From assembly GCF_001194135.2 (NCBI RefSeq), contig NC_068994.1, positions 44,950,260 to 45,014,259 of the forward strand: a stretch of DNA of 64,000 nt. Direction: 5' to 3'. The translations under genes were made by a program, and so were the position numbers. The notes under the pieces are model-generated. The model was not told the DNA's origin and ran no database searches. It saw only the letters and a list, made by a program, of their open reading frames with translations. Source of the stretch: Octopus bimaculoides. Taxonomy: Eukaryota. This document shows, in pieces, positions 1,531 through 60,800 of the stretch (position 1 is its first letter; the number at the start of each line of letters is the position of its first letter).

Positions 1531-1759
1531 TTAGCCCCTTTGATGCCAGTCCATCTGAGACTGCTCGTTGTATGGTACAAAGTCTCTTTTTCAAAGTTAT
1601 CTAAATCAAAAATTTCCCCATGAAAATTCCACATTAGTTTATTTATCAAACATCAGCTTAATATCAACAAAATTGTCGTACTATCTTCTTCATTATCTTT
1701 TAAATTAATTGAAAGAAAAACAGTTTATTTCAGTAGAAATATGGTAACGAAAGGGTTAA
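1531..1759. mobile_element. piggyBac-type MITE, family 1, copy A
   Basis: Ends ttag-CCCCTTTGATGCCA ... TGGTAACGAAAGGG-ttaa (TTAA-type site, CCC/GGG termini). A second related copy lies at 37639-37868. Confidence 0.65.
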
Positions 1760-2832: not shown

Positions 2833-3040
2833 TACTCTCTTTACTCTTTTACTTGTTTCAGTCATTTGACTGCGGCCATGCTGGAGCACTGCCTTTTAGC
2901 CGAATCAAATCGACCCCAGGACTTATTCTTTGTAAGCCTAGTACTTATTCTGTCGGTCTCTTTTGCCGAACTGCTAAGTTACGGGGACCTAAACACAGCA
3001 GCATCAATTGTCAAGTGACGTTGGAGGGACTATCATATAT

Positions 3041-3095
<55 letters not shown>

Positions 3096-3410
3096 NNNNN
3101 NNNNNNNNNNNNNNAAAGTGTAGTATATTGCCACTTAAGTGTGGCTGACCCCTAGGGGTGGATGTTACTGTTGCTTTTAGCCCCAGGAGGACATCTCCTC
3201 CAGCTGGCTTATCGACACACGACTGTGTCCTGTTTGCCAAGGGTAGTTATCCCTAACGAGCTTCTTTCAGTTTCCGTCTACCAAATCCACTCACAAGGCA
3301 TTGGTCGGCCCGAGGCTATAGTAGAAGACTCTTGCCCAAGGTGCCACGCAGTGGGACTGAACCTGAGACCATGTGGTTGGTAAGCAAGCTACTTACCACA
3401 CAGCCACTCT
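2833..3410 (-). mobile_element. tRNA-derived SINE family A (TAAAAGAG tail), interrupted by (AT)n, a gap and a nested insertion
   Basis: Matches the uninterrupted copy at 54606-55013. Fragments also at 4240-4368 and 18238-18460. Confidence 0.85.
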
Positions 3411-3592
3411 AGGAAATTATGATCTTATTCATCCAGTTGTTTATCAAGAATCAAAACATTTGCTCCTCTGCCCCAGTTACATAGACAACAATCCCTTGTC
3501 ACTCTATCATAACTAATACAATGAAACATTGATTGGCCTACTCAAAATCTGGAACCAACAACACTCTTTTCATAAAATGTGATATGAAATAG

Positions 3593-6598: not shown

Positions 6599-9020
6599 TA
6601 TATGGTTATATATATTCATGTGATATACATTTATATTCTTCATGATGTCTATGTGTGTGATCGTTATCATCATCAATATTTAGCTTCCACTTTTCCATGC
6701 TTGCATGGAATTTGTTGAGGTAGATTTTTCTATGACTGGATGCTCTTCTTGTCGTCAAGCCTCACCTGTTCCTAAGCAAAGGAATATTTTCCCCATGGCC
6801 ATACATCCTTTCCCTGGACGACTGGAAATGCACAACATCACTTCTATGATAGTGATGCTCATTTACAGCCATTATGAGATTATGCCTAGAGAAGGGGACA
6901 CTCACACACACACTCACACACACACTCACACACATACAAAAATACATATATGTATATAACATACAGTTGTGATGAATACTGAATTAAAATTGTGATTATC
7001 ACAGTTTTAATTTGATATTAATGGCAACTGTCTGGCGAACGGGAACGTGAAACTCTGAGTAACAATTTATGAAGATTTTGCAGCTTTAATAAAAGTACAC
7101 ACACATACAGTAGGCTTCTTTCTGTTTCCATCTACTAAATCTACTCACAAGGCTTCTGTTGGCCTGGGGTTATAGTAGAAGACATTTGCCTAAAGTGCTA
7201 CACGGTAAGACTGATCCAAAGTAGGTTTACGGGAACTGTTTGGAAACCTATTCAGAGGGCCAGAGCATTTTCACATAGATTGTCTAAACGAACCTGCCTG
7301 GAAATTACATCAAGTGTACTTGACTGTAGAATCAACAACTTACACTCTGAGATAAGTTCCATTGACCAAACAACAGACAGACTTATTTGTTCAAAACTGA
7401 TAAGAGTCCATTTATGTGTGAATGTGTGTCTTGTTATGAATTTTGCGAGTTTTCTGTCTGTCTATCTGTCCCTCTCTCTTTCTTTCTCTGTCTTTCAATG
7501 TGTTTTTATGTTGTTTGTGTTTATGTTCATATTTTGGTTGCTACTCCATTAAATTCATCATACTGCAGGGTTACATGACGTAAAAGGCATCCATGCTGGT
7601 GACACGTAACAGGCACCCGTAGCAGTGATACATGAAAGGCACCTGTGCTGGTGACACGTGTAAGAAATGCCCAGTACACTCTGTAAAGTGGTTGGTGTTG
7701 AGGAAGGGCACCCAGCCATTGAAACCAAGCCACAGCAGACAACTGGAGCCTAGTGCAGCTCTCCAGCTTACCAGCTCTGGTCAAACTGGCTAACCCATGC
7801 CAGCATGGAAACAGACATTAAATGATGATGGTGGTGGTGGTTTGATGAATTTAGTTGTACATGTTTAATGGCTTCCCTTGTCACCTCATGTCACCACTCA
7901 TCATATCACCACCCATTGCCTTGGTGCCCCTCACTTCACCACTCCTCACCTCGTCACTTGAATACCCCATCACCTCTCTGCCCACTTTTCATTGTTCCTT
8001 ATCTTGCCACCCACCCTATCACTTTCCCCACTCATCACCTTGCTACCCTTACCTCACCATGCCTCACCTCACCACTCCTCGCCTCACTACTTCTCACCCC
8101 ACTACTTCCCACCCCACTGCTCCTCACCTCGCCACCCATCACTTCCCTCTAGATAATCTTGCTACTACTTCCCCTCTCACTTCACACCCATTATCTTGTT
8201 GCTCATCACCTCTCTGCCCCTTCGCCTCATCTCACCGTCCCTAATCTCGCTGTACCTCACCTCACCATGCATCACCTTGCACACTAGTAACCCTGAAATC
8301 CACTTGAATTAGCATTCAGTTTGATACTGAAGCAAAATAATGCTATCTTATTATTGTAGCCTACTTAATAAATATAAACACCCACTCAAGCTCTCCCCAC
8401 ACACACACCTACACACGCCTATTTACATACACCTAAAACTTTTTGTTTATTAATGTTACCCATGGAGAAAATAACGGTGCTATTATTTGGCAGAATTGTA
8501 TTTTTTCTGGGGGTTTTTTTAATTAAAATTTTTTTTTTTAATTCTATGTTCTGAGTTCAAATCTTGCTATGGTCAACTTGGCATTTTATTGTCTTAGTGT
8601 CAATAAAATGAAGTAACCATCAAGTATTGAGGTTTGTTCAATTGATTTGTACCTTCTGCCAAAAGTGGAAACAAAACACACACACACATACACAAAAGGC
8701 TTCCACACAGTTTCTGTCTACCAAATTCATTCACAAGGCATTGGTTGCTGCAGAGCTGTAATAGCAGGAGAAATTTACCCAAGATGCTGCACAGTGGGAC
8801 TGAACCCAATACCATGTGGTTGCAAAGTGAACTTCTTAACCACACAACTGTGCCAGCACCCATAGTAAAATAATCATGTTTATTATATGTGCACATCTTG
8901 CTGAGGTCAACTGTACCTTTTCCTTTTTTAAGGTTCAAGTTTTGGTGTTGATATAATTAACCAGGTTCCTTCCTCAAATTTGACGGGTTTCTTTTTTTTG
9001 ATTGTATTGGAAATCATCCA

Positions 9021-24257: not shown

Positions 24258-24818
24258 CCAGTCCACACTGTAAAAGTGGTTGATATTTGGAAGGGCATAA
24301 AGCCATAAAACCCATTCCAAAGCAAACCTCACTGGTGCTGGTGCCACATAAAAAGCACCCACTCTGTAAAGTGGTTAGTATTAGGAAGGGCATCCAGCTG
24401 TAAAAATCATGCCAAAAGAGACCTCGCTGGTGCTGGTACCACATGCAAATCACCCAGTCCACTCTGTAAAGTGGTTGACATTAGGAAGGGCATCCAGCAA
24501 ATGAACCATACCTCACCAGTGCTGGTACCATGTAAAAAGCATCCAGTCCACTCTGCAAAGAGGTTGGCGTTAGGAAGGGCATCCAGCCATAAAAAGTATG
24601 CCAAACAGACTTTGCTGGTGCTGCTGTCATGTAATAAGCATTCAGTTTATTCTGTAAAGTGTTTGGCATAAGGAAAGGCTTCCAGCTGTAAAAACCATGA
24701 CAAAACAGACATTGGAGCTTGGTGCAGTCCTCTGGCTTGCCAGCTCCTGTCAAACCATCCAACTCATGCCAGCATGGAAGATGGACATTAAATGATGATG
24801 ATGATGATGATGATGATG
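24258..24818 (+). repeat. Family D retroposon with about 5 tandem ~95-100 bp internal units
   Basis: Repeated cactctgtaaagtggttgg..ttaggaagggcatccagc..ctcactggtgctgg units, then a normal 3' end and (GAT)n. Confidence 0.8.
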
Positions 24819-25473
24819 TACACGGATTCCTCACAGTTTCTGTCTAGCAAATTCACTCACAAGGCATTGGTTAGCCTGAAGCTGTTGTAACTATTACCCA
24901 AGGTGCCACACAGTAGGATTGAACTTGAAGTCATGTGGTCGCAACCCATGCTTTAACCTACAGCCATGTCTGAAAGGGAAAATGACAAGTTGGTCATAAT
25001 TGGAGTGTCTTTGATCATAACCTGAGATGGAGCAAAACATCACCACTGGAGACTACTTGGTTCCAACTTGGAACTTTCAGTTTCTTTACCTTTTAACAAG
25101 TTCTAATTTTATACTGAAAAATTCAGTCTGGAATTCTTTTTATTTATTTAGTTAATTGTTTATTCTATTTCATTGTATATGTATTTGTTTCCTTTCTTTT
25201 GTAATATTTTTTCATTTCTAATCAGTAAAAGATTCAGTAGTTTTCATTTTTCTCTTCCTACGTTATACTTTTATTCATTTAATCAATTTTACTTGAGGCT
25301 CAATATAATGTCCTTTGAGAGGTTTCAACAGTTTTCTATCTTATCCTGTACATTTCTGGTACCTATTTGAAATAGAAATTTACTTGAGCAAACAAGAGGG
25401 ACTCAACACAGATGACCGGCCAGATTCCTCTCACAATGAAAGAGAAAATATATTGGACAGTTCCCCAGATAAT

Positions 25474-31745: not shown

Positions 31746-32546
31746 GTGAGTATTTAGTTGGCTTCTTTCCCTCTAGCACTCAATCATTGCCATAAATTAC
31801 TTCAGTATGAGCTGCATTATTATACTGCTTATGTATATGAGACGGTGTTGCTGCTACAGCCAAATATCATACATCTAATTTCAAAAATGAAGCTTTCTCT
31901 TCAAGTCCAGAAAATACTATATTTAACCCATTAGCATTTAAACCAGCCATATCCAGCCCAAATATGCTATCTGTTTTTATATTCTAACCAACCGGATCAA
32001 GCTTTATGTTCTAACCAACCAGATCAAGCCTATCACACATACCCTTCAGTGCAAGGGTACGTGAAGGAGATTTGGCTGTTATTTCTAGTAGGTCGATCGA
32101 CCACATAGAAGTTTCCTCTTTGGCTTGAGGAGAGCTGAGTGTATTAAATGGATTATGAAAAGAGAGGGACACAGCAAGACAATTCAGAGGAACATAAGTC
32201 ACTACAGTAGCTGTAGAAGAGACAGTGAGAGGAAGCAACATGCCTGTGAACCAATAGCCAGGATTGCCCTTGGCTAAACAACAACAATAATCTCTCCTCC
32301 TTTCAGTGTCCCTAGATCACCTAATCCTCACGCTCAGTAATTTCTTCAATCCTATGTGTTTACATGAGTACAACAGACTTCAAGAATATCTTTCCTGGCT
32401 ATATTCTTCTGACAAATATTACTCCACAGAAATTCAAACTGGATCTGTCCAGTCTGAGAGGATGTTGCATATGTCATGTCTGCTGTTGCTTTACTTTACA
32501 CTGTGTAACTGGAAACAATCTGTATCTTAGTAATCCAGTCTAACTT

Positions 32547-33095
32547 CTGGTTAACCATCAGTCGATATCCTAGAAACCTGATTAATCATCAGTCACTGTA
32601 CCAGAAAGGTTTTTAACCATCAGTCAATATTTTAGCAACCTGGTTAACCATCAATCAGTTTTCTGGTGACCTCTGGTTAACCATCAATCAATATTCTAGA
32701 GACCTCTGGTTAACCATCAATCAATATTCTAGTGACCTCTGGTTAACCATCAATCAATATTCTAGTGACCTCTGGTTAACCATCAATCAGTATTCTAGTG
32801 ATCTGGTTAACCATCAATCAGTATTCTAGTGATCTGGTTAGCCATTAATTAGTATTCTAGTGACCTCTGATTAACCATAAATCGGTATTCTAGTGACCTG
32901 GTTAACCATCAATCAGTATTCTAGTGACCTGGTTAACCATCAATCAGTATTTTAGTGACCTGTTTAACCATCAATCAGTATTCTAGTGACCTGGTTAACC
33001 ATCAGTCAATATTCTGGTTAACCAGCCATCAATAAGCTGACCTTGATAATCATCACTCAATCTCCTAGCAACCTGGTTAATCATCAGTCAGTAAT
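32547..33095. repeat. Minisatellite, about 17 units of 30-32 bp
   Basis: Consensus ctggttaaccatcaatcagtattctagtgac(ct); homogeneous in the centre and degenerate at the edges. Confidence 0.92.
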
Positions 33096-33256: not shown

Positions 33257-34690
33257 GTAAGTGAAACATTGCCACCGATGCTTAACTGAAAAAACGTGTG
33301 TGTGTACCTTTGTCTTGACATTATATGATGGTAAATAAATGAGCATCACTGTCATGGCAGCAATGTTCTTTGTTTCCAGTCTTTGTAAAACATGTCTGAC
33401 CATGGGAAATATCACCTTGCTTGGTAACAGGAAAGGTAACCGGCTGTAGAAAATCTACCTTGTGGACATTAAATGATAATAATGATATGTGTATGATATG
33501 CTTCCATATGGTTTCTGTTTACCAAATTTTACTCAAGGCATTAATCGACTTCAGGCTATAGTAGAAGACTGTTGCCCATCCAAGGTGCAACACAGGTACT
33601 GAACCAGGGAACATATGGTTATAAAATGAACTTTCTAAACATGGTTTTTTGAGAAGCCAGGCTCTGTTTGACAGCTACTATATTTTGTTCAATAAAACTG
33701 TGGGTTCAAGTCTAGCCATATGAATTTTCTCTGAAATGAATGTAAGGTTACAATACAGCTTATTAAAATTTATTAAACCTTTACCAACATTGTTGTTCAG
33801 TAGCAGAATAATATTACAGATAGATTAGGTGCTTGTACCACGTAGAGAGCACCTGTACTGGTGCTACATAAAAAGCACCCAATATACTCTGTAAAGTGGT
33901 TGGCATTAGGAAGGGGATCCAACCATACCAAAACAGACAAATGGAACCTCCAACTTACCAGCTCTTGTCAAACTGTCCAACCCATGCCAGCATGGAAAAC
34001 AGACATTAAATGATGATGATGAGATTATATCTTCCACTTAGCTGCTTAGTTAACATCCTTTTTGACATAAAGTGAAAAATAATTGACAACTCTCAAAGTA
34101 GAAGAGGTGACAAGTGTAAAACAAGGACTATAGCTTTCAGAGTTGTCTTCTAAGACTGCACATTCGATACTACTTGTGTGGACTTTTACTCTGTCTAAAG
34201 ACTCAGATATTTGAAACAAAATATAATTTTAAGAGAAAGTATATATTTCATAGTTACAACCACAAATTGAACAATCATCTTATAGTTTTCAAAATGATGG
34301 TGGAATTTCTATAGGTACTGCTTGTTGTTATTGTTATTGTTGTTATTATTTAACTTGCCTCAGGTTTGGTCTCATTCCTGATAGAATTTATGTGGTAGCA
34401 GGTTACTACCTGTTTATTATTATTATTATTTATTTATTTTTTTTTTCGAGGTGGCAAGCTACTAGAATCATTAGCATGCCAAGCAAAATGCTTAGAGGCA
34501 TTTCATTTGCTTTTATGTCCTGGGTTAAAACTGCTGAGGTTGACTTTGAGTATTGATGAAATAAGTCCCAGTTGAGTACCAGGGATGCTGTAATTTACTA
34601 GACCCCCTCCCACCAAATTTCAGGCCTTGTGCTTATAGTAAAAAGGATTATTATCATTATTAATTATCATTATTATTATTTCTCTTGCAG

Positions 34691-34827
34691 AAAGGTCATC
34701 CCATAATCTTCTGCCCTTTACATAAAAGCCATCTTGATTACATTATTGTCACTTGGATATTGTGGATTCACGACATGCGAGTGCCTTATGTAGCAGCTGG
34801 GGACAATCTGAACATCCCTATTATTGG
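34691..34827 (+). CDS. GPAM: GPAT1-like coding exon 8 (catalytic motif I)
   Basis: ttgcag|AAA...GG|gtttgt; KGHPIIFCPLHKSHLDYIIVTW...PYVAAGDNLNIPII contains the HxxxxD motif. Confidence 0.97.
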
Positions 34828-35667
34828 GTTTGTACTATTTTCCTTTGTATTCTCTATTATATAACATGTTTTTTTCTATGATGCATCATGTAATTCCTTA
34901 ATGACACAACAGATAATAACAGCTTGTTCTCTAATGACACATCAAGATCTAACAACAGGGGTCTCAAACTCAGGGACACTGATTGGGCCATTACGTTTTG
35001 GCGCAGGGCACAGTGAGGCAAAAATGAGATGAGTTGGGGAGTGATTTCTACCAGCTATGATACGGATCTACAATGCAGCTGATAGACTACTATTTATTTA
35101 TCTTTTTCTCAACAATGTTTGCACCTTCCTCTACATTAGTAAATGATACACATATACTTAGGAAGTGCATGGCTCAGTGGTTAGAACATCAGGCTTAAAA
35201 TCTCGGGGTTGTGAGTTCAATTTCCAGACCAGGCTGTGTGTTGTGTTCTTTGAGCAAGACACCCTTATTTTACATTACTCCTCTTCACTCAGCTGTAGAA
35301 ATGAGTTGTGACATCATTGGTGCCAAGCTGCATCAGCCTTTGCCTTTCCCTTGGACAACGTCAGTGGCGTGGAGAAGGAAGAACAGTATGCATGGGTAAC
35401 TGCCAGTCTTCTCCAAACTTGTCTGGACTTGTGCCTCGGAGGGTAACTTTCTAGGTGCAATTCCATGGTCATTCGTGACCAAAGGGGTTCTTCACACTTT
35501 TACACATATACTTATGTGATGGGCTTCCACATGATTTCTGTCTACTAAATTCTACTTGTGAGGCTACAATATAAAGCATTTTGCAAAGGTGCTGCATTGC
35601 AGAATCAACTCCAAACCATGTGGTTACTGTGTGAACTTCTAAATCGTACACCCATACCTATGTCTGT

Positions 35668-36298: not shown

Positions 36299-36872
36299 NN
36301 NNNNNNNNNNNNNNNNNNNNNNNNNNNNNNNNNNNNNNNNNNNNNNNNNNNNNNNNNNNNNNNNNNNNNNNNNNNNNNNNNNNNNNNNNNNNNNNNNNNN
36401 NNNNNNNNNNNNNNNNNNNNNNNNNNNNNNNNNNNNNNNNNNNNNNNNNNNNNNNNNNNNNNNNNNNNNNNNNNNNNNNNNNNNNNNNNNNNNNNNNNNN
36501 NNATATATATATATATATATATATACATATATATATTTCTGTGCATGAGTATCTATGTTTGCTTCCAGTGCCAAAAGGTACTGTCACCAAAACAGGTTCA
36601 GTGTCCTGTCAACCAAGCGAAATTACCTGCATCCATCTCCCTCTCCACCGCCACCCCCGTCTCTCCATATGTGTATATTTCTGTGCACATGTGTGTGTGT
36701 GTGTGTGTGTGCGTGCGTGCATGTGTGCTTTCAATACCAAAAGGTACAGTCAGCAAAACAGGTTCAGTATCCAGTCAGCCATGCCAAACCACCAAGCATC
36801 CAAACAGCTGCACCCAGTCATCTCATTCTTTGTTACCGGCCTGTTTAAACTGTTCCTTACTTTGCATTTCAG

Positions 36873-36966
36873 GCCAATATTAAGGGCTGTGGGAGGATTC
36901 TACATCCGAAGGCGGTTAGACACAAATGGCAAAAGAGATCTCATCTACCGATCAGTGTTACAGTCA
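36873..36966 (+). CDS. GPAM: GPAT1-like coding exon 9 (motif II)
   Basis: tttcag|G...TCA|gtaagt; PILRAVGGFYIRRRLDTNGKRDLIYRSVLQS. Confidence 0.97.
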
Positions 36967-37201
36967 GTAAGTAAAAGTTTCCTTGCCTCTGGTTTGAAAG
37001 CCTAACTTTGAACTTGGGCCCTTGATAATTTCAGCTACTAGTACATAAAAGTCCTTGGTTTCAAATGCTGGTAATGTTTGAACAAACTGTCATGCAGTGC
37101 AGTCAAACCTGAAACTATATGAAGGGTGTGTGAGTGTGCGTGTGCATATAATTTCCCTTTTTGCCTTTTGGACTTCAATTTTCTATTTCATCTATATTTA
37201 G

Positions 37202-37331
37202 TACATGCAAGAACTTCTCCAGGAAGGCCAATCTTTGGAATTCTTTATAGAAGGTGGAAGGAGTCGAAGTGGCAAAGCTCTCTATCCGAAAGGTGGTCTA
37301 TTGTCAGTCATTGTAGATACATTTCTTCAAA
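37202..37331 (+). CDS. GPAM: GPAT1-like coding exon 10 (motif III)
   Basis: atttag|TAC...A|gtgagt; YMQELLQEGQSLEFFIEGGRSRSGKALYPKGGLLSVIVDTFLQ. Confidence 0.97.
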
Positions 37332-37638
37332 GTGAGTATACATTGCTTTATGAAGGTTATTTTTTTTTTTTTTTTTACATTTTGGTCAAACATTCTTATC
37401 TCTTGCTCACAGTTCTTCTGGCTTCTCCCTATACTACTACGACTACTACTACTTTTGTCCACTCAGATGCTCTTTACTCACTCATCTAGCTTCCTCTCAC
37501 CACCACTATTGTGTCCAAACCCCTGGATCCACACCAATCACTATACCCAGTTCTTTCTGTACAAGATGTTAGCCCTTTGGACTTTCTTCTATGCATATGT
37601 CTTTCTTGTAGCCAACTTCCAACAATTCAAGCAAAACA

Positions 37639-37868
37639 TTAGCCCTTTTAATGCCAACCTGCTTGATGCAGCCCCTGGTTCTGTGATACAAATTTCCTGT
37701 TTAAAGCCATCTAAATTAGAACCTCTCGTTGAAAGGTGATGTTCATTTGTATTCCAAACACCAGCTGAATAATGACAAAGTTATTTCATTAAATTCATCA
37801 TTATTTTCAAAACTATTTGATACAAAAGCAGTGTAATTTGATAGAAATATGGTAACAAAAGGGGTTAA
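37639..37868. mobile_element. piggyBac-type MITE, family 1, copy B
   Basis: ttag-CCCTTTTAATGCC...TGGTAACAAAAGGGG-ttaa; similar to 1531-1759. Confidence 0.65.
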
Positions 37869-38348
37869 TAGCAACAAATCTTAGCAACCTTGGAGGGTCT
37901 TCAAAGCCATGGGTACAGTCTTTTCACTCATACCAAAATAATATGAACTTGATCTGGTGTTGTTTTGGCAACTGTGCATGTACACACATGCACACACACA
38001 CTATTATCATGCTTGATAATTGTTGTTTTCCTTATTAAAGGTATCAAGTAATCACTGTAAATTTAAGTGGCAATATTACAGCCTAATCTTTTTTTCCTTT
38101 AGTTGAATTGTAACTGATGTCAAAGTAGATATATAAGGTAGCTCATATTTTTTTTTGACATGGATGGTTAATACAGGTGGTGGAGAAAGAGCAGCATATG
38201 AAAACATCTGAGATGAGAGCCAGTGGTATTTTGTTATGGCCTTTTACAATTTGATTACAAATTCCCCTGAAGTTGACTTACGTTCTGATTTTCCCATGAT
38301 CAAACTTTCTAATGTCAGATTTTCTTTATCACACACACACAAGCACAC

Positions 38349-38381
<33 letters not shown>

Positions 38382-38409
38382 TTAAATCTATTTCCCCCCC
38401 TGTTTTCAG

Positions 38410-38492
38410 GTTGCATACAAGATGCCTATATTGTACCCATCAGTATCAGTTATGAAAAGTTGGTGGAGGGTCATTTTATTGATGAACAAATG
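38410..38492 (+). CDS. GPAM: GPAT1-like coding exon 11 (motif IV)
   Basis: tttcag|GT...ATG|gtaagg; CIQDAYIVPISISYEKLVEGHFIDEQM. Confidence 0.97.
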
Positions 38493-38610
38493 GTAAGGTC
38501 ATATTTTGATTTTAACTATGAGTGATTTTGATAATCTTTTTTGTTGATTAGCATTGGGTCAGTCTTGATCTAGCTAACCTGTTTCTGTTCTTCACAACAC
38601 TGTGAAACCT

Positions 38611-39166
38611 TTAACTCTTTAGCATTTAATCTGTCCACATCCAGCCCAAATACTGGTTTCTCTGGAAAATCAGAGGACATTGTGCTATATGCAGCCACCA
38701 TGTTGGACACAAATGATGACTCTTGAATAACTAAGTGACAGCTGTTGTTATTGTTATTGTTATTGTTGTTACATTTGCCATAACCCTTTCCCACTTGCTC
38801 GACTGAACTCGCTGAGATGCTTACTACCAGCACCAGTATTTTGTGGCTTTATTATATTCCATCTCAATCCCTGCTCTTACCATTAGTTCCTTCCTCTCAT
38901 CTCATAACATCATCCCTCTAGAATTCCCTTCCCAACCGTCCAACCCATGCCAATATGGAAAACAGACATTAAGTGATTATGATGATATTCAACCTGTTTT
39001 TTTTTTTTATATTCAAACTGACGAAATCCAGTCTCTCAGACATCCCCTTAATGTCATACTAAAAATAAACAATCTTAGAGGCACAAGGTAATACAGGATT
39101 AATTCAAACCAATGTGAATAAATAAGGATTACATTTGACAGAGTAATCTGAGTGCCAAAGGATTAA
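38611..39166. mobile_element. piggyBac-type MITE (family 2) split by a ~330-bp insertion carrying a GPAT exon/intron copy
   Basis: Left part 38611-38652 and right part 38985-39166 together match the reverse complement of the intact MITE 57010-57238. TTAA at both ends. Confidence 0.8.
38650..38834 (+). pseudogene. Intronic duplicate of the 3' half of GPAT exon 15 plus downstream intron (source 42817-43019)
   Basis: tggtttctctggaaaatcagaggacattgtgctata is identical to the exon. Similarity continues through aaatgatgactcttgaat..ctaag...actgaact.gctgagatgc.tacta into intron sequence. Confidence 0.92.
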
Positions 39167-39898
39167 GTGCTCACGACACATTTCATGTTTCCAGTTGTTA
39201 CAAGATAGCTTGGGAATAGAAATCAGACTCAGAAGGTTTTCAAAGAAAATAACTAACAATCATTTTTATTCTAGTATACTGGCATAAAATATTGAATAAA
39301 ATGGAAATTTAGAAAAAGAAGGAAATATTTTTTTTTAAATGTTTCTAATTTTTCATATTTGATATATTTTTAGAGCATACTTGATTCAACATTTTTTTTT
39401 CTGTTCATGCTGTGTACAGCAATGGGTTAAAATGACTGCTTCTGATTTGCTTAGCTTAGATATTTGTGTGTATTATTTTCAGTAGCAGACCTTACTTGGT
39501 TACCAGGCTTAACACTATTACCTAACTCTGAGGTACTTGTTAGCTAAGTCCACTCTGCAGGTATTCAGACCAGGGCTACAGATAGTTAACTCTTCTATTT
39601 CCTTCTTTTTTTTTTATCAGTCTAAAGAGGAGGGTGCTGTGCTTGTAGCTTTTAATTTGTGTGTGTGCGTGTGTCCATGTATACATATATATATATATAT
39701 ATGAATATGAGTGTCTGAGCCTACATCAAAAACAAAATATCAAACTGCCAAAGCCATACACACCATTCATATTTATAAAGTAAAAACAAGCATAGCTTAA
39801 TAATTAAAAATTATTTATTTTTTTTTTCATTTACTGTATTAATTATGTATTTTTGTTGTTATTCACTATGTTGCTGAATTTGTATTTTATTTACACAG

Positions 39899-40012
39899 GG
39901 CTTACCAAAGCAGAAAGAAAGTGTGTGGGGCACACTCAGGGCACTACTTCATGTATTCTGTGGTGATTATGGCAACATAAGGGTTGAATTCCCACAACCA
40001 TTCTCTTTAAAG
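39899..40012 (+). CDS. GPAM: GPAT1-like coding exon 12
   Basis: acacag|GGC...AAG|gtaacc; GLPKQKESVWG...DYGNIRVEFPQPFSLK matches GKPKKNESLW...NYGCVRVDFAQPFSLK. Confidence 0.97.
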
Positions 40013-40323
40013 GTAACCATTTCGTTTGATTATGAAGAAGAACAGTATCTGTCTTGTTATTGTATTGGATTACTAACTTTGTTTCCATGTGTGTTTATGC
40101 TCCACTTACTCCATTCCAAAATGTAAAATGGCAAACTGTAATTTCAGTTGTTCACGATATAAATCGTTTTGGAGGCCTACAAAATAAAGTACCAGTTTAG
40201 AACTGGTGTCAATGAAATCAACTTTCCCCTCTCCTCCAAATTGCTGGCCTTGTGCCAAAATTAGAAAGAATTGCTATTGTTTCTGTGTGAGAAATCTAAA
40301 GTTTTTTACTCTGTTTACTTCAG

Positions 40324-40519
40324 GAATTCATCGAGTCTTACAACATTGATAACAACATAGCGATGCCGAACCTGTTGCCAGCTTTAACACCTCCAGTCAA
40401 CGGAGTGTCTCCATCATCTATGTCTAGCAGTCTCTCAAGTAGCACCTCACTTTGCATGTTCAACGTGAGCAAAGAAGCCAGAGATTTAGTGCAGAGTTTG
40501 GCAGAGCATATAGTTTACA
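40324..40519 (+). CDS. GPAM: GPAT1-like coding exon 13
   Basis: cttcag|GAA...A|gtgagt; EFIESY...RDLVQSLAEHIVY matches RRLIANLAEHILF. Confidence 0.95.
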
Positions 40520-40579
40520 GTGAGTATTACACTTTATCTATCTTCAGTCTGCCTGGATCTCAGCAATACATGCGCACGT

Positions 40580-40612
<33 letters not shown>

Positions 40613-41577
40613 GAAAAAGGGAGAACACAATTATTACATTGGGATACAACATTGAGGGGAATAAGCTAGGAATGATTGACAGAAACTCACAAAATTGCTA
40701 CAGTACACTGTCCTTTGTATATGTGTGTGTGTGTGTGTGTGTTATATGTGTATGCAATTTTGATGTGCAAATGCATTCACTCACACAAATTTGAAAGATT
40801 AGCAACGTTAATTCTTTGAGAAAATTCAAAGTGAAAATGCGAAAGAGTTCACTTCTGCATATATGCTGTACAACAGGATGAAAGTCAGACAGTTTTTTAC
40901 TGTCCTTGCTGCATATAAAGATGATGCTTTCTTGTTTGTGTCTGAAAGCTTCTTAAAGTATTACACTGAATGAAAGGATGAGTGCTAAAATACATTGCAG
41001 TTTCACTCCAGAAGAGATGCAGAAATCAGCACTCAGGTACACACTGAAATAGTACAAGATGTCCTAGACTGATTGGGAATAAATGGCAAAAGTTTGCATT
41101 GGCTGGTACTCAACAGTAGTCAACGGTGTAAAAAGCATATGAGCAGACTGAATACAGGAAATAAACAAAAGAAAACTGGTCCACACTGCTAAAAGAAAAT
41201 CAGCAACAACTATCTAGCAACCTTTCTTCTATAATGTGTTTCAATTGAAGATGGTTACTTGCATGGATGTGCACATCTTTTGCAATGAATGATAAAATTT
41301 GCCCTCGTGCAAAAACAATTAGAGGGAACTTTGCTGTCAGCCGTTATGACCAGTGTATATGCGTGCTGACTACCAGATGATATTAAGAAGGCCATCATTG
41401 ACAACAATGGACTGCCAAGAAGATGTATATACCGTGTGTGTATATATACAGTTATGTATTAATGTAAAAAGCAATCCATTATTTTTTTTTATATATTCTG
41501 TAGTGATAAAGCTTTTCGTTGACAGTACTTTATTAATGCCTACTACAAGTATTTTTATGACAACACTTGTCTCATGT

Positions 41578-41628
<51 letters not shown>

Positions 41629-41817
41629 TCTATGTATGCACATACATAGTGGAAGTCGACTTGTGACCAAATAAGATCACTTCTTAAATTCTAAAAAAAC
41701 ATCTCACATTTGGTCTCCCCATTGATGAATATGTCTCATGGCTCTTAAGGCCTACAAGGGACCTACAAGTCATTCCATACCAACTACGTACATACATGCA
41801 TATGTGTCTGTGGTGTG

Positions 41818-41848
<31 letters not shown>

Positions 41849-41907
41849 ATAAAAAATGCATAAATGTGTGCATAAATAAGTTGTTTTTTTTCCTTGTCTT
41901 TCCACAG

Positions 41908-41978
41908 GTTCTGTATGTAGTACAGTACTGATGAGTACCAACATCTTGGCATTTTTGCTCTTGACAAAATACCGTCAG
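41908..41978 (+). CDS. GPAM: GPAT1-like coding exon 14
   Basis: ccacag|GT...CAG|gtaagc; SVCSTVLMSTNILAFLLLTKYRQ matches IMSTHIVACLLLYRHRQ. Confidence 0.96.
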
Positions 41979-42746
41979 GTAAGCAACTTATCACTTCTTA
42001 TAATCAAGGGAACTGCTACAAGGTTACTTCAGCTGATAGAAATAGCAGCTAAATATTCCTCAACTCAAACTTCACTGTCTTTAACAAAGAAGGACACATT
42101 AGATTTTGTAGTCTAGTTACCTATAAAAAGTCAATGCTTTTGATTTTAGATTTGCTAAATCAGAGCTAACTTTAAAGTCAATGCTAAATCAGAGGTAATT
42201 TTAAGTTAAAGATCCACTATTATTTATAATACTGTCATTGTTGACTTCTTTTGATCTTACAATTCAACGTTTTTTTTACTGTTTTGTATGTTCGCAGACA
42301 TACATTTTAATCTTGCTCTGAAAATTGTTTGAAGGTCAATCAGAACAGCGGCTTAAGAACAATACTATTGAAATTACAAGTTTTCTTAGATGTTTATTGA
42401 AGGAGAGTTGAATGTTATTTCTAGCAGGTCAACCAATCAATTAAAGGCATTCTATTGTTGCTTTGTTGCTGTGAAAGCAGCAAGCGGGCAGAATTATTAG
42501 TGCATCCGACAAAATGCTTAGTTTTATTTCTTGTAGCTCTTTATGTTCTGTGTCCAAATTCTGCTGAAGTCAGTTTTGTCTTTCTTTCTTTTGAAGTTAA
42601 TAAAATAAGGTACTAGTGAAATACCGTTGTCAATGTAATCAACTTGCCCCACTTTCCCTAAAATTGCTAGCCTTGTGCCAAAATTTTAAACCATTATTGC
42701 TTTATTGCTGTTCCTGCTACTGATTTGTCTGTGTGTCTTACTACAG

Positions 42747-42892
42747 GGTGCCACTTTGAAAGAGCTTGCAGACAGCTTCAAAGAGCTGACTGACCTTGTG
42801 AAGAGCCGGAACCGAGATATTGGTTTCTCTGGAAAATCAGAGGACATTGTGCTATACGCAGCCGCTATGCTGGGCACCAATGTCCTGAAAAG
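42747..42892 (+). CDS. GPAM: GPAT1-like coding exon 15
   Basis: ctacag|GGT...AG|gtaaat; GATLKELADSF...RDIGFSGKSEDIVLYAAAMLG matches DLGFSGNSEDVVMHA. Confidence 0.96.
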
Positions 42893-43909
42893 GTAAATGA
42901 TGACTCTTGAATGACTAAGCCGCATCTGTAGTTCTTGCTGCTGTTGTTATATTTACCATTGCTTTGACCCTTTTCTACTTAATCCACTGAACTAGCTGAG
43001 ATGCCTACTATCAGACACCCCGACAGTTCCGTGCATGACAATTCAGGGAAACGACAATTCTGTGCAAAGACAGTTCAATGCATCGTCTTTATGCATATTT
43101 GAAATTTAATTTAATTTATTTTGTTTTCAAAATTTCTGAATCATGTTCCTTGTTATTCACCACACCACACTCCAACACACTTACACCTTACTGCATGTTG
43201 GTATAGGATGGTAAAAGTTGCAATACAGCTCACTGGAAGATTTAGTTCACATCATTATCAGTAATGTGAACTAGATTTTCTGAAAATGTCACCTACAACA
43301 TACACAAACATCCTGTCTTGGTGCCAAGAGCTAAATAGTAGCTCTGAAGAGTTTCTGATGGGAGGATGGTCATGGAAAATGTGATGAATTCTTTGAGATA
43401 TATCATCATCATCATCATTGTTTAATGTCCGTTTTCCATGCTGGCTTGGGACAGACTGTATGACTGGGTCTGGTAAGCTGCACCAGGTTCCAGTTTTCTG
43501 TTTTGGCTTGGTTTCTACAGCTGGATGCCCTTCCTAATACCAACCACTTTACGGAGTCCACGAGGTGTTTTTTACATGTCACTGACATGGGTGCATTTCA
43601 TGTGTCACCAGCATGGGTGCCTTTTACGTGTCACTGGCACTGACAGTGACCACAATTCACTCAGCTTGGCATATCCTCTCAAGCACTTCAAATTGCCAGA
43701 AGTCTCAGTTACTTATCATTGCCACCACGAGGCCCAACAAGGAAAGATCGTATTTCACTGTCTTGTCCTATGTCTCCCTGGGTATACCCCTTCCACAGGT
43801 TATCACCACATTTACAATATTTTTTTTTTTAATGTCATGAACTTGTGTGTTTTCTATGATTGAAAAAAAAATTTCGTTTTCTTTTCTAAATTTTCTTGGA
43901 CACTGGCAG

Positions 43910-44028
43910 GAATTTTACCGAGATTGGAGATGTGTATTTTAAACCCGCTATCAGTCTACCTTCAGTGTTTTCCCTCAGTTACAGCAGTGCACCTGTAACA
44001 AATGTGTTTGCTATGGAGAGTGTTATTA
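43910..44028 (+). CDS. GPAM: GPAT1-like coding exon 16
   Basis: tggcag|G...A|gtaagt; NFTEIGDVYFKPAISLPSVFSLSYSSAPVTNVFAMESVI matches TVPSVFELNFYSN...VFIMEAII. Confidence 0.95.
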
Positions 44029-44668
44029 GTAAGTTTTTATTATACTACTTCATTGCTGTTTCTCATTTTCAAATGTTGTTGTGTTCATCATTTCATCCTT
44101 CCATTATTCTTATTGTCTTCAGAGGAAAGAAAAAGCAACATTGACCTCATTGAAATCTGAATTTAGAATGTAAAGGAGCATAAAGAAATATCACAATACA
44201 TTTTCTCTGCTCTTCTACTGATACTGCCAATATGTGTTTGTGTATATTGAGAGAGAGAGAGTCACAGACAGACAGAGATGGCCAGGCTTCTTGGTGGGCA
44301 TACCTCACTTTGCCTGAAGAGTTTTGTTATTGGTGAAACTAACAATCAGCTATTGATAAAAAATATGTTGTATTCTGCATATTAGCATTGAGTTCTTTAT
44401 ATATATTATCATCATCATCATTTAATGTCTGTTGTCCATGCTGGCATTGATCACAGCAGTTGTTCTTGCTTTACCCTATCATCATTCAAACATGTTGAAA
44501 TTGTTGCCCCTATTGGGGGTGAGTGTAATGTAAGCATTGTAAGTATGTTATGAATGCTGTAAATATAAGCATTTCTGCTGCAAATATAAATATGTCAATG
44601 TTTAAATTAAGTAAATGAGTGCTACATATATCTATCTATCTATCTATATATATATATANNNNNNNNNN

Positions 44669-44699
<31 letters not shown>

Positions 44700-45308
44700 T
44701 TAATCAATATTGATTTGGTATGCCTCCACCTGAACCTAGTATGTTGTAAGAAGACAAAACTAAAAGAGTTGGCGTTTAAAAGGACATCCAATAATAAAAC
44801 ATAGCCTCACACTGTCCCATTTGGTCTATGCCAGTGTGGAAAAGCAAACATAAAAAACAGTGATGATGAATCATACAATACAGATGTCTAGTATTTTACA
44901 AGGAGATTACATTTAGGTAACTTATTTTAATGTGTTTATAATGTACAGTGTATTCTAGTTCTCTATTCACAATATACCACTGATACAGCAAGAGAATATT
45001 TAGGAGTTGAGAGATTGATAAAATGGGAGACATATAAGGGCATTTTATTATGACTATGCTTAGGATTTTCTCTTTCTAATATTCCCATACATATTTTAGG
45101 GCTGCAAGCTGGCAGAATTGTTAGCCGGCAAAATGCTTAGTGGTATTTTGTCTGTTTTTATGTACTGAGTTCAAATTCCACCATGGTTGACTTTGCCTGT
45201 CATCCTTTCAGGGTCGATCAAATTGACTTTCCCCCCTTCCCTTAAACTACTAGCCTTGTACCAGAATCTGAAACCTATATTCCCATACTTTACTCTTTGT
45301 CTATGCAG

Positions 45309-45457
45309 TTGGTGCTTGTTTCTATGCCGGAAACTTCGGCCTTTCTGATGTCGGTAACTCAATGCAGAGGACGGATATGTCTGTAAAGAGAGAGGAGCTT
45401 TTTGCAGCAGCACAGGTTCTTTGTCAGCTCTTCAAGTATGAGTACATCCTGTCTCTG
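45309..45457 (+). CDS. GPAM: GPAT1-like coding exon 17
   Basis: atgcag|TT...CTG|gtaagt; GACFYAG...REELFAAAQVLCQLFKYEYILSL. Confidence 0.93.
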
Positions 45458-56110: not shown

Positions 56111-57013
56111 TGGGTTTGTGTCTAAATCAAAACAAAATTATTATTGCTATTGTTGTCGCTTATGACTATGATTATTTGCGATTTGAGCAATACATCAAAA
56201 ATTTCCTTTTCTGTGTTAATGAATTAGTTGTATCTTGAAAATGTACAAATAATTGAGATTAGCAAAACGTTTTCAAAGAACATTATTTATTAGTGACAGA
56301 AATGTGTTGATAGAGACAATGGAATGCCTAAATCCTTTATTATATTCTATTGTGTGTGTGTGTGTGTGTGTTTTTTTTGTTTTTTTTTACTGTTTGGTTT
56401 CAAATTTCCCCAAAGTCAACCTTGTTTTTTTTTCGCAAACTAACAATCAGTCTTGAAATGTTAGATTTGCCTTTTCACTGCTTATGTACTTCTTATCCAA
56501 AACTTCTGAACTTAGTTGTATTATTTTTAATGGCTCAGACCACCACGAGGATTTTTTTTGAGCATGTGGCTTTTTTTTTTTAAAACCCGTATTCTGTTTT
56601 AATGAGCCACAATGGTTGTTAGATCAAGGTGTATGAGTTCAAATCTTAATGTACAGCTATTGTACTGTGACATAAAGTAAGAGATGTAACNNNNNNNNNN
56701 NNNNNNNNNNNNNNNNNNNNNNNNNNNNNNNNNNNNNNNNNNNNNNNNNNNNNNNNNNNNNNNNNNNNNNNNNNNNNNNNNNNNNNNNNNNNNNNNNNNN
56801 NNNNNNNNNNNNNNNNNNNNNNNNNNNNNNNNNNNNNNNNNNNNNNNNNNNNNNNNNNNNNNNNNNNNNNNNNNNNNNNNNNNNNNNNNNNNNNNNNNNN
56901 NNNNNNNNNNNNNNNNNNNNNNNNNNNNNNNNNNNNNAGCAAATATTGTAAAAAAATAATGTATAAAACAATAAAATTGTATCAGAATTGTTTTTCTCTA
57001 AAGTTTACATTAA

Positions 57014-57234
57014 CCCTTTAGTGTTCACATTATTCTGCCATAATTAATGCTTTTTTATCCACATTGTTTTGAACTAATCATGCATTATCTCGTAGCTATG
57101 AGATTTTGATGAGGTAGCTGTTAATTTTTAAAACGATATTGTATGGTTGGTGTGAGAGACCAGATCTGGCCAGTTTGAACATAGAATAGGCAGAATACTT
57201 TTGGCCGGATATGGCCGGTTTAAATGCTAAAGGG
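57014..57234. mobile_element. Intact piggyBac-type MITE (family 2)
   Basis: TTAA (57010-57013) CCCTTTAG ... CTAAAGGG TTAA (57235-57238). Related copies at about 60078-60295 and 31924-32035. Confidence 0.85.
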
Positions 57235-57603
57235 TTAAACAATTTGTATCACATATATGAGACACATCTTGAACCAACAAGGAACTATCCATGTGGTGGT
57301 TCATCAAACTAGAAATAGCTGCCTAATTTCACTTAAATAACTCTTCCATGTTAAATAAGGAAGAACACTCTTAAAAAGATGGGATGGTCAAGGATGGAAT
57401 GTCTCCAATCATAGTGCTCCTTAATCAAGCTTGATCTGGAGATAAAAAAAAATCAAATCATCACATTTACAGATCTATTAAATTCTCTCACAAATTCACT
57501 CTTTCACAATAACAAACTTGTTTAAGTCATTTACATCTCCCTGCAAACCTACTGAATCACATTACACATCTATAGAATCACCATGTTACTTTTAGCCCCA
57601 GCA

Positions 57604-57826: not shown

Positions 57827-60800
57827 ATCGATAATCAATAATCTGGTAAAATCACTAATCCAGCACTCTCCAGGTCCTACCAATGCTGGATAATTGGCAG
57901 TTAATAAATGAAAAAAAAACAAACTGGAAAGGCCTGCCTTTGTTCACAAATGATGCAAGTGTGTTTATGCAGCAAGTACCGCAACCCAGGAAATTTGAAA
58001 TTATTTGAAATTTTTCTAGCTGTAATTAATGCCAGATTACTGATTTGTCAGATTAGTGGCAGTCTACTGTAATAGTTAGGGTAGTGAAGGCATGCGGCTT
58101 AATGGTTAGGGTGTTCAGCTCACAGTTGTAGTGTCATGAGTTTGATTCCCGATGATGCATTGGGTCCTTGAGCAAGACACTTTATTTCAAGTTGCTCCAG
58201 TCTATTCAGCTGTAAAAAATGAGTAGTACCTGTATTTCAAAGGGCCAATCTTGTCACGCTGAATCTCCTGAAAATTACATTAAGGGTACACATGTCTGTG
58301 GAGTGCTCTACCACTTGCACATTCTACCTTTAATAATAATGATTTGTAAAAAAAATGAGGATTATGGTTGATTGATATTTTATAATTGGCTGTGAGGAAG
58401 AAAGCAACTCAAGTATTAAGGGACTCCAGGAACATTGATATAAGGTTAGAAATTTGGTTAGGAGGGGTTAGTCTAGTACATCAGCTCCCAGTACTTGACT
58501 GATATTTTATTTTATCATCCTTTGAAACATAAAGATAATCTTAGCATTTGAATTCAGAATATAAAGAGCTAGAACAAATATCACTTGGCATTTTTTCTAA
58601 TGCCACAACCAGTCTACCAAACCAGCATTCTCAGTCGTCGTCATTGTCTTTATTATTCAACATCTGTTTACCATGCTGGCACATATTGAACAGTTCACAG
58701 GTTCCAGCAAGTTGCAGGGCTGCCCTGAGTTCCAGTGTCAGTTCTAATGTGGTTTCTACCGCTAGATGCTCTTCCTAATGCCAACTACTTTACATTGTGT
58801 ATTGGAAACTTTTTTTTTGTTTGTGCCACCAGCTAGTGAGGTTGCCAAATAACTGTCAAGACAAAAAAAGAAAAAGAAAAAGCACACCCCTATTAAGTGA
58901 TGGTGGGGCTTTATGCCAAGGGTTGAACGGCAAAGGTATGATAGAGAACATAGGTGTCTCACTATTAAAGGGAATGCACAGCTACCATACATTATACGAG
59001 CATGGATTGTATAAAATGATAGAAGGCAAGGTTGACCCTGGCAGAATAATAATACTGATTTCAAATGTTGGCACAAGGCCAGCAATTTTGGGGAGAGGGT
59101 AAGGTTGATTATGTCGACTCCAGTGCTCGACTAGTACTTATTTTATTGACCCCGAAGGTTTGAAAGACAAAGTCAGCCTTGGAATAATAATATTGATGAT
59201 TAATTGGATCATCAGTTAAAAATAACTATAATCAAAACCTAAGCTGAAATCTTGTCTTTGATACAGTGTACGTTGCATGGAAATCCACTTCAGTGTGTTA
59301 ACATAAAGAAATCCTGGAATTGTTTGGAGTTCAGACTCCCCGTTAAACTTTTAACAACACGAGAAAAACTAGAATTAAAGAAAAAAACTCCTGATCATAT
59401 CCAGCTCCTCTCTCATTCTCTACAACTGTCATTTCTCACCATCTAACATATCCAGCCACCAAGAAGTTAGGTACTACTGTTTGTGTTTCTGTTCGACTGA
59501 TTGAATTTTTGAATATTCCCTCTGGTATGTCAAACTGCTGAAGATTGAGAAGTTTTACTGCTTGTAGGTGCAGCAAGTATGGCAATATGTTTGAGAAGTT
59601 CATTCTGAAATCACATAAGTCTTCATTCAGTTCAGTACCACTATGTGAGGTGAGATGACTCAGCTTGATCCGAGCCTTGTGAGAGTGAAACAGAAATTTT
59701 GCTGAATCCTGCTGGAGGGACTGTACCTGTTCTTGGGTGGTAGATTTAATTCATCATCTAGCACTACCAATTGGCCTTTCAGTGCCTTTAATTGTGTCCA
59801 TTCTGTTGCATGCTATTTGAGCCAGGTTCTCAATCTGTGGATAACTTGATATTCTTAGGTGCTGTTTCCTTCTGCACCAACTTGGAAGTCAGGTAGTTAT
59901 TCCTTCCTTTATCCATAATGTCATAGGATCTTACCTCCTCTGACTAAGCTATATAAAAAAACAAAGGATATATATCTAATATTATATCTGACTGTATTTT
60001 ATTTATTTAAGCTGTATAACTGATGCATAAATGTTAAATTCTATATTCTCTGTGTATATATGTATATATCCCCTATAATTGAACCCTTCAGCATTCAGAT
60101 TACTCTATCAAATGTAACATTAAACACTTTAAATTAATCATGCATTATTTCATAGCTTTGAGGTATTGATGACATTTGTTTTATTTTTAGAATTATATTG
60201 TAGAGTAGGTGTGAGAGGCTGGATCTAGCCAGTTTGAACATAAAACAGGTAGAATCTTTGGGTGTGATACAACTGGTTTAAATGCTAAGAGATTAAAGGT
60301 CACACCTTGATATTCTAATTCCACCTCAAAAATAAGTTAAGTTTGTGGAGTATTCATTGAATTAGCTGCCAATTCAATGAATAGGTGATTCGGTTAATTA
60401 AACAACTAAATAGTCAAAATTTAGGTTAATTAAACAACTGAATAGTCATTGTCGCAATTAATAATTCCATTCACTTATGTACATATATATCTACTTTAAT
60501 TAACTTATTAATTAGTTTGAGGAAGATGGATCAATGCCCATAGCCTTTTTTGGTTCCAATATATGGCTAATGAGCAGTTTGAAATTTGTGTGGGTGGGTG
60601 AAGTTTCATGAAGAAGGATTGAGAAATTTGCCACAAAACCACAAATTCTTGAGGGAAAGACACAGTTGGATAAGTCTGTTTCATATCCCTAGATTTATTT
60701 ACTTGACATCCAACCCCCATATACCTCCAAAAGTTAAAATGCATGCTTGGCTTCAGCAGAAATCGAACTTTAAATCTAAAAGTTACAAATACTCTGAGCT

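Follow-up and report, generated by a model that had tools for sequence, protein, structure and literature searches.

The + strand of a 64,000-nt stretch of the Octopus bimaculoides genome (NC_068994.1, positions 44,950,260 to 45,014,259; this whole stretch is called the window here) carries part of a GPAT1/GPAM-type gene. One intron of the gene holds a TTAA-bounded, piggyBac-like miniature inverted-repeat transposable element (MITE) that is split by an insert of about 332 nt. The insert begins with a copy of an exon/intron segment of the same gene and ends with the 3' end of a retroposon. The joined exons of the gene match Pfam Acyltransferase PF01553 (E=1e-20) and then GPAT_C PF19277 (E=5e-16), and the top protein-database match to them is Mytilus GPAT1_2 at 55% identity, with nothing closer returned. 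The exon just 5' of the MITE has its donor GT at 38493-38494, and the MITE begins 119 nt into the intron that follows. The source exon of the copy is the fourth exon 3' of that one and aligns with GPAT proteins of other animals. An earlier reading of this DNA, here the original prediction, had already identified the host gene as GPAT, and both the domains and the Mytilus match bear this out. It had also placed the insert in intron 11 and its source in exon 15; the relative spacing is compatible with this numbering, while the absolute numbers are that reading's own. The parts of the locus are the following.

38410-38492, + strand: exon just 5' of the MITE, ending GCIQDAYIVPISISYEKLVEGHFIDEQM (sequence, tblastn, Pfam on the joined exons).
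38611-39166, + strand: TTAA-bounded piggyBac-like MITE, split by the insert of about 332 nt (sequence, profile, alignment).
38611-38653, + strand: left MITE arm, terminal triplet CTC where the family has CCC (profile positions 1-43, E=2.8e-7).
38650-38654, + strand: left junction, J1, ATACT (sequence, alignment, profile).
38654-38838, + strand: GPAT exon/intron copy, right limit 38834 to 38838, source 42821-43019 (blastn, alignment).
38832-38848, - strand: inverted copy of J1 (inverted-repeat search against 38643-38657).
38849-38933, + strand: 85-nt piece with no match in the window.
38934-38986, + strand (sense): 3' module shared by the SINE-like "family D" (SINE, short interspersed nuclear element) and its LINE partner (LINE, long interspersed nuclear element), AACCGTCCAACCCATGCCAATATGGAAAACAGACATTAAGT, then a degenerate (GAT)4 tail (blastn).
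38985-38989, + strand: right junction, ATATT (sequence; the right-arm profile match starts at 38985, which is model position 40).
38987-39166, + strand: right MITE arm, terminal triplet GGA where the family has GGG (profile match 38985-39165, positions 40-226, E=3.7e-46).
42747-42892, + strand: source (donor) exon, ending GATLKELADSFKELTDLVKSRNRDIGFSGKSEDIVLYAAAMLGTNVLK, with splice donor GT at 42893-42894 (sequence, tblastn).
42817-43019, + strand: donor segment, from exon nt 71 to about nt 125 of the next intron (blastn, alignment).
57010-57238, - strand: intact reference copy of the MITE, ends TTAACCCTTTAG and CTAAAGGGTTAA (12/12 nt complementary).

The MITE is a short, non-coding, multi-copy unit of about 225 bp, and its profile was built from the window's own family copies, of which four were found in the window. 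Both TTAA sequences of the split copy are kept (38611-38614 and 39163-39166). In blastn searches of the window the left arm also matches 57239-57199 and 31922-31964, and the right arm matches 57186-57010 and 60245-60082. Since the arms occupy profile positions 1-43 and 40-226, they are collinear halves of one element that overlap by 4-5 nt. They are likewise collinear when aligned to the intact copies at 57010-57238 (-) and 60081-60295 (-), in agreement with the split TTAA-bounded MITE of the original prediction. No MITE sequence was lost at the break, and 4-5 nt, ATAC[T] on the left and ATAT[T] on the right, stand on both sides of the insert. As judged from the termini, the TTAA duplications and the CCC…GGG ends of the family are a piggyBac signature. 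piggyBac elements have been reported in Octopus vulgaris (PMC13282606); an autonomous partner encoding a piggyBac transposase was not noticed in the window, in which no search was aimed at one. A further copy of the family lies at 31923-32051. Its left part is intact, it has an internal 27-nt tandem duplication (31976-32029), and its right part is replaced by unrelated sequence, so that it may be a second interrupted or truncated MITE.

The GPAT part of the insert is recognized by a same-strand blastn match in the window between 38650-38834 and 42817-43019 (74.9% over 203 columns, E=2.7e-36), which agrees with the approximately 185 nt, copied from 4.2 kb downstream across the exon-intron boundary, of the original prediction. 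The copy begins 75 nt into the source exon and runs across the exon/intron boundary, and it consists of 56 exon nucleotides (donor 42822-42877) and about 125 intron nucleotides (donor 42895-43016 or slightly beyond). The donor segment itself is intact, on the same strand and 4.17 kb 3' of the copy. A 17-nt deletion between 38710 and 38711 (donor 42878-42894, with AATG repeats on either side) has removed the end of the exon and the donor GT from the copy. To judge from its splice sites and frame, the copy is a non-functional, dead fragment, because it has neither a splice acceptor nor a splice donor and meets an in-frame stop early. Look-ups of exact open reading frames (ORFs), namely two across the insert, an internal-ATG version and an antisense ORF over the donor, gave no match in a collection that yielded no cephalopod GPAT.

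The exon part of the copy differs from the donor at 5 of 56 positions, all of them transitions (Jukes-Cantor distance, JC, 0.095; ~9%), whereas the intron part differs at 27 of 120 (JC 0.27; ~22%). The lower divergence of the exon part identifies the constrained exon as the donor, with the intron drifting on both sides. A (TTG/TTA)n microsatellite is longer and purer in the copy (38743-38779) than in the donor (42927-42952), and part of the intron divergence is therefore microsatellite drift. At 4 of 49 positions, by hand count, the retroposon tail departs from the consensus of its subfamily. These divergences appear to agree on a single age for the parts. With a calibration of JC 0.09 at about 25 million years (My; PMC13282606), the event would be approximately 25-40 My old. 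Thus sequence and alignments agree with the original prediction that a host gene fragment was captured in cis, in the same orientation, by a MITE that is bounded by TTAA and lies in an intron farther 5' in the gene.

The motif ATATT occurs both in the MITE consensus where the element was broken (AAATATTC) and in the source exon (GATATTGG), and at the left junction the copy now reads ATACT; the ATA(T) microhomology proposed earlier for this junction is contained in the shared motif. J1 would represent microhomology or else, if a target site was duplicated, the left one of two copies of at most 5 bp. One of its bases, C38653, matches neither the MITE nor the GPAT parent. We ruled out that the donor read ACT rather than ATT when it was copied: the junction codon ATT (Ile) corresponds to I, L or V throughout the GPAT proteins of other animals, and C38653 therefore arose in the copy. 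On the right, ATATT at 38985-38989 is a possible right copy of a target-site duplication, its AT being equally assignable to the last GAT of the tail. The duplicated flank is thus at most 5 nt (ATACT/ATATT), and the donor microhomology and the tail AT account for it equally well.

A second trace of the left junction lies at the other end of the GPAT piece. The reverse complement of 38832-38848 reads AGCC[A]C[A]AAATACTGGT, against AGCCCAAATACTGGT at 38643-38657, and the 10-nt core (AAATACTGGT/ACCAGTATTT) is perfect. The position of this inverted copy coincides exactly with the end of the GPAT piece opposite J1. With the left junction fixed, 38 of 200,000 shuffles of the right-boundary sequence give a perfect 10-nt inverted pair across both boundaries (2e-4); across the whole window, such an inverted partner lies somewhere 150-250 nt downstream for 0.08% of positions. 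In the predicted DNA fold of the insert, the two sequences pair as the closing stem. An unusual single-stranded fold of the insert as a whole was considered and rejected, as its total energy equals that of shuffled sequences (z=0) and only the junction stem stands out. The left-arm side of the pair is the original, because the left arm matches other copies of the MITE. The inverted copy includes the first GPAT bases and the junction-specific C38653; it was therefore templated after J1 had formed, and the GPAT piece was probably made first, from left to right. We read 38832-38848 as the probable footprint of snap-back (fold-back) synthesis. Of the middle of the insert, given in the original prediction as about 95 nt of unknown origin, only 38849-38933 is without a source in the window, the overlooked inverted junction accounting for 38832-38848.

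Several searches were directed at this middle part. By blastn-short and nhmmer, 38835-38933 matched only itself in the window, and its local alignments to the flanks, the GPAT copy and the donor region were at chance level. A 13/14 match of the same segment to the splice donor of the upstream exon, in reverse complement, was set aside (p=0.2), as was a collinear likeness of the 85-nt piece to the MITE interior (p ~0.07), which the MITE profile did not recover. A metagenome scan for the boundary between the 85-nt piece and the tail module gave no match. For the 85 nt at 38849-38933, filler, a third template and the body of a 5'-truncated retroposon are all possible sources. The window contains 11 runs of N totalling 2,321 nt, the nearest at 36299-36502 and 44659-44668, and such assembly gaps could hide a missing local template for the piece.

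The last part of the insert, 38934-38986, is 78-89% identical to the 3' ends of family D copies, nine of them at least, in line with its original assignment to that end of the family; the module is also found in other families of the window. Its GATGAT ends at 38986 and the MITE restarts at 38987, so that the tail stands directly against the right arm. The nearest copy of the family is also the one that matches best, and it lies in the same gene, on the same strand, 4.9 kb upstream of the insert.

33895-34026, + strand: nearest and best-matching copy of family D (89% over 56 nt, 33971-34026, with the same number of tail triplets, then ATT).

An antisense copy of family D (43402-43548, -) lies in the donor's own intron, about 400 nt 3' of the copied segment. 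An exact-pattern scan with the tail module found three metagenome contigs. One of them, L003 (Ga0164306_10019889), encodes at 163-3435 (-) a complete 1090-aa ORF of a non-LTR (long terminal repeat) retrotransposon, with Pfam matches to RVT_1 (E=2e-31) and to Exo_endo_phos (E=1.3e-4; its 22.3 bits fall slightly short of the curated cutoff, 24.5), as well as a weak PHD-like match. The tail module is the last 15 codons of this ORF (…NRPTHASMESGRKTD and stop), and a microsatellite tail follows it there as well. Since the module ends an ORF with apurinic endonuclease (APE) and reverse transcriptase (RT) domains, the 3' end of family D is one borrowed from a non-LTR retrotransposon. This coding role in the LINE may explain why the module is conserved across hosts. 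The C-terminal motifs of the L003 ORF look RTE-like. Rfam and ARAGORN searches of the window gave no matches, and no tRNA-derived head of family D was detected in it. The 5' half of the family consists of tandem head units of about 40-100 nt (…GGTGACACGTAAAAGGCACCC…), seen at 24360-24821 and 7640-7858. These tandem units blur the 5' ends and the target-site duplications of family D copies, and the use of such duplications as a yardstick for the insert was dropped for this reason.

The remaining exons of the host gene were located by similarity to a human GPAM probe in tblastn; the list, given here with the two exons named above, counts as a lead only.

34700-34837, + strand: GPAT exon by similarity (approximate, as are all in this list).
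36868-36960, + strand: GPAT exon.
37202-37321, + strand: GPAT exon.
38410-38492, + strand: GPAT exon, just 5' of the MITE.
39899-40012, + strand: GPAT exon.
40480-40548, + strand: GPAT exon.
41919-42002, + strand: GPAT exon.
42747-42892, + strand: GPAT exon, source of the copy.
43917-44030, + strand: GPAT exon.
45272-45457, + strand: GPAT exon.

In the intron region upstream of the recognized GPAT exons, a 31-nt unit whose core is the palindromic TGGTTAACCA is repeated in tandem about 15 times (32547-33015); a 95-nt period was also scored for this array.

We tentatively favor an origin of the insert in one old break-repair event within the MITE, in which the left end was extended on GPAT DNA and then folded back on itself, the right end acquired a reverse-transcribed tail, and the two products were joined. 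The MITE would have broken at …CCCAAATA(TT)/CAACC…. The left 3' end (top strand) would then have annealed, through 3-5 nt (ATA/ATATT), to the antisense DNA strand of the gene 4.2 kb downstream, and an error-prone polymerase would have extended it by about 185 nt across the exon/intron boundary, slipping over 17 nt between the two AATG repeats. The strand would next have dissociated and snapped back, its …ACC-3' end pairing with GGT at 38655-57 and copying 12-15 nt of the left arm in reverse; extension from this GGT pairing does reproduce AGTATTT(G)GGCT. After a second dissociation of the left-derived strand, the right 3' end (bottom strand) would have used AT to pair with a SINE or LINE RNA at its (GAT)n tail and reverse-transcribed the 3' module, optionally yielding the 85 nt too. 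Joining of both nascent strands would have completed the insert. The product in the intron would be a non-functional and non-mobile fragment.

The make-up of the insert, copying from the constrained exon into the MITE, the inverted J1 and the LINE nature of the tail module can be read from the sequences; we infer the order of these steps, DNA and not RNA as the template of the GPAT part, reverse transcription for the tail, and the single event. If the GPAT sense strand was made from left to right, its template would have been the antisense strand, and so chromosomal DNA and not sense pre-mRNA. The GPAT piece was thus probably synthesized on DNA, from the left break end rightwards, and DNA repair is further supported by the intact donor in cis at 4.17 kb, the length of 185 nt and the microhomology at the junction. 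For the opposite end, a tail that is in sense, ends naturally and abuts the target is what reverse transcription primed from the right end predicts, and this is the simplest origin for it. The original prediction had offered two mechanisms. Its switch of a reverse transcriptase to the unspliced GPAT transcript is disfavored by the inverted copy of J1, and its alternative, templated DNA repair, is better suited to the GPAT part.

Several points weigh against a single event of this kind. One event and successive events are indistinguishable at this locus alone, and 85 nt of the insert (38849-38933) are without an assigned source. A target-site duplication cannot be established; it would be 0-5 bp long and is confounded by the ATATT of the donor and the AT of the tail. 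Snap-back rests on one inverted repeat of 10-17 nt that was noticed post hoc, which past 10 nt requires two 1-nt indels, and C38653 must be a priming error made at the event.

It is unlikely, in our view, that the whole insert came from target-primed reverse transcription of the tail with two template switches, first to another RNA and then to unspliced GPAT pre-mRNA, and with the left end joined by microhomology. Such a tripartite chimera would place the tail at the 3' end, next to the target, and the GPAT and retroposon pieces both in sense, as they are found; the tail module comes from an element with APE and RT domains; and LINE template switching is documented as a source of bipartite and tripartite chimeras (PMC2104539; bioRxiv 10.1101/2025.02.02.635956). 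The ATATT on both sides could be a 5-bp target-site duplication, and a nascent pre-mRNA tethered at its locus could account for the cis relation. However, a cDNA growing leftwards would have made the inverted copy at 38832-38848 before J1, of which it is a copy, and no clear target-site duplication is seen. The 5' partners in the two studies are abundant small or non-coding RNAs, retrotransposon copies and spliced exons, and there is no unspliced exon-intron piece of the insertion-hosting gene among them. In addition, none of the 39 proximal (<5 kb) primate duplicons with examined breakpoints shows features of retroposition (PMC2671141).

A repair wholly without reverse transcription, in which all patches came from nearby DNA by microhomology-primed switching (synthesis-dependent strand annealing or a process like microhomology-mediated break-induced replication), we regard as rather unlikely. 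The snap-back footprint suits such synthesis, and the identified templates would then all be local, as in chimeric repair-mediated duplications (PMC2671141). The best match to the tail is itself local: the copy at 33971-34026 is 4.9 kb upstream on the same strand, is 89% identical, and has the same number of triplets followed by ATT. Over 53 nt, however, this copy is indistinguishable from members of the subfamily that match at 86-88%, and the patch would have to end by coincidence in the natural 3' tail of a retroposon. The 85-nt piece has no local template in the window, though 11 assembly gaps are present.

Insertion of a 5'-truncated retroposon into the MITE and a separate break repair with GPAT DNA, in either order, appear distinctly improbable. 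Nested insertions are common in this repeat-rich window, and 38854-38865 (ATATTCCATCTC) resembles the start of the right arm, 38985-38996 (ATATTCAACCTG), at 9 of 12 positions by hand comparison. This pair could be the decayed 12-bp target-site duplication of a nested retroposon at 38866-38984. The resemblance is not significant, however, and local alignments of the segment to the flanks are at chance. All the parts are about 8-10% from their constrained or consensus source, and two hits within the same few nucleotides of a 225-bp element would be unlikely. An assembly artefact, whether a chimeric join or a collapsed repeat, is very improbable in spite of the 11 N runs in the window, as an artefact would equal its source and the copy is 9-22% divergent from the donor with several indels, copy and donor share one gap-free stretch of assembly (36503-44658), and the junctions carry biological signatures (microhomology, the inverted junction copy and the tail).

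The original prediction also held that the unit resembles a Pack-type element able to move the gene fragment. Like Pack-MULEs and other Pack-type transposons (plant review, PMC13317346), the composite has a host gene fragment between the ends of a non-autonomous cut-and-paste element whose target-site duplication is kept. Unlike these, it has degenerate terminal triplets and shows no sign of mobilization after capture, and its cargo, which came with a retroposon tail, was not picked up in the course of gap repair of the transposon. A blastn search of the 64-kb window gave no further copy of the composite, the terminal triplets are CTC and GGA instead of CCC and GGG, and the insert is old, with a divergence of about 9%; ability to move is therefore not upheld. 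The termini are probably not intact enough for a transposase. We give only a very small chance to the composite being, or having been, mobilized as a unit by a piggyBac transposase, as an animal "Pack-piggyBac" that spreads a host exon/intron fragment to other TTAA sites.

Among systems already described, the closest known kind appears to be repair-mediated duplication, by which proximal DNA is copied into a transposon that has been broken (Pace, Sen, Batzer and Feschotte 2009, PMC2671141), here made chimeric with a retroposon tail. In that survey of duplications interrupting primate transposable elements, 824 of 1,136 donors lay within 5 kb and the mean length was 162 bp; of the proximal cases, 39 were examined, and each of them bore signatures of break repair and lacked a retroposition tail. 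Two 3' ends that copy different templates and then anneal were the explanation given there for chimeric acceptors, and duplication of an exon into an intron of the gene to which it belongs is on record (PMC2671141). The octopus insert shares with these duplications an interrupted element in two collinear halves, in the same orientation and abutting on the consensus within +/-30 bp. It also shares an intact donor less than 5 kb away on the same chromosome (4.17 kb), a length of 185 nt against the mean of 162 bp, and microhomology and filler at the breakpoints, and its chimeric build and own-gene exon copy have precedents among them (PMC2671141). It differs from them in the retroposon 3' module and microsatellite tail at one end, in the snap-back copy of its own junction, and in its occurrence in a mollusc and not a vertebrate.

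Chimeric retro-insertions (Buzdin and colleagues; Gogvadze et al. 2007, PMC2104539; a census of LINE-1 chimeras, bioRxiv 10.1101/2025.02.02.635956) have the same order of a cellular 5' piece, a middle piece and a LINE or SINE 3' end with its tail. As in such chimeras, the octopus insert has its cellular and retroposon pieces in one sense, its retroposon piece is truncated at the 5' end, and the tail stands next to the target. In contrast, the cellular part in octopus is an unspliced piece of the same gene in which the insertion lies, and a clear target-site duplication is absent, whereas that of the fungal tripartite element is 14 bp (PMC2104539). The inverted copy of the target junction between the octopus parts is likewise not predicted by a cDNA that grows leftwards.

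Templated sequence insertions of class 1 (LINE-mediated) and class 2 (patch repair) (Onozawa and Aplan, PMC5110952) are similar in their length of a few hundred nucleotides and their intronic templates, and those of class 2 also in the microhomology and filler at their junctions. Their patches, however, come from distant loci and an RNA route has been argued for them, whereas the octopus donor is in cis at a distance of 4 kb, and the way in which synthesis ran speaks for DNA as the template. Snap-back synthesis is described as a signature of synthesis-dependent microhomology-mediated end joining (SD-MMEJ) and Pol theta repair by Yu and McVey (2010, PMC2943611) and Kent et al. (2016, PMC4912351). 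The inverted repeat adjacent to the break, priming by 3-5 nt of microhomology, dissociation and re-annealing are all features that the octopus insert appears to share with this kind of repair. Usual SD-MMEJ inserts are tens of nucleotides long and templated within tens of nucleotides of the break, whereas the octopus snap-back follows an excursion of 185 nt to a site 4 kb away. The likeness to Pol theta is one of footprint only, as the polymerase is not identifiable from sequence.

The insert is real and, as we read it, an old and ordinary repair scar. Its practical value is modest: the fragment has no splice sites or open frame, is about 9% diverged, and gives no sign of movement or expression. 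A genome-wide census of such scars in the repeat-rich genomes of cephalopods would be of more interest than this single case. The locus is a readable record of break repair in a mollusc germ line, in which a short-range copy of a host gene, a fold-back on its own junction and a retroposon tail at the opposite end can be told apart. It suggests that repair-mediated duplication of nearby DNA, catalogued so far mainly in vertebrates, also works in cephalopods, and that such repair can combine with retroposon reverse transcription at one break.

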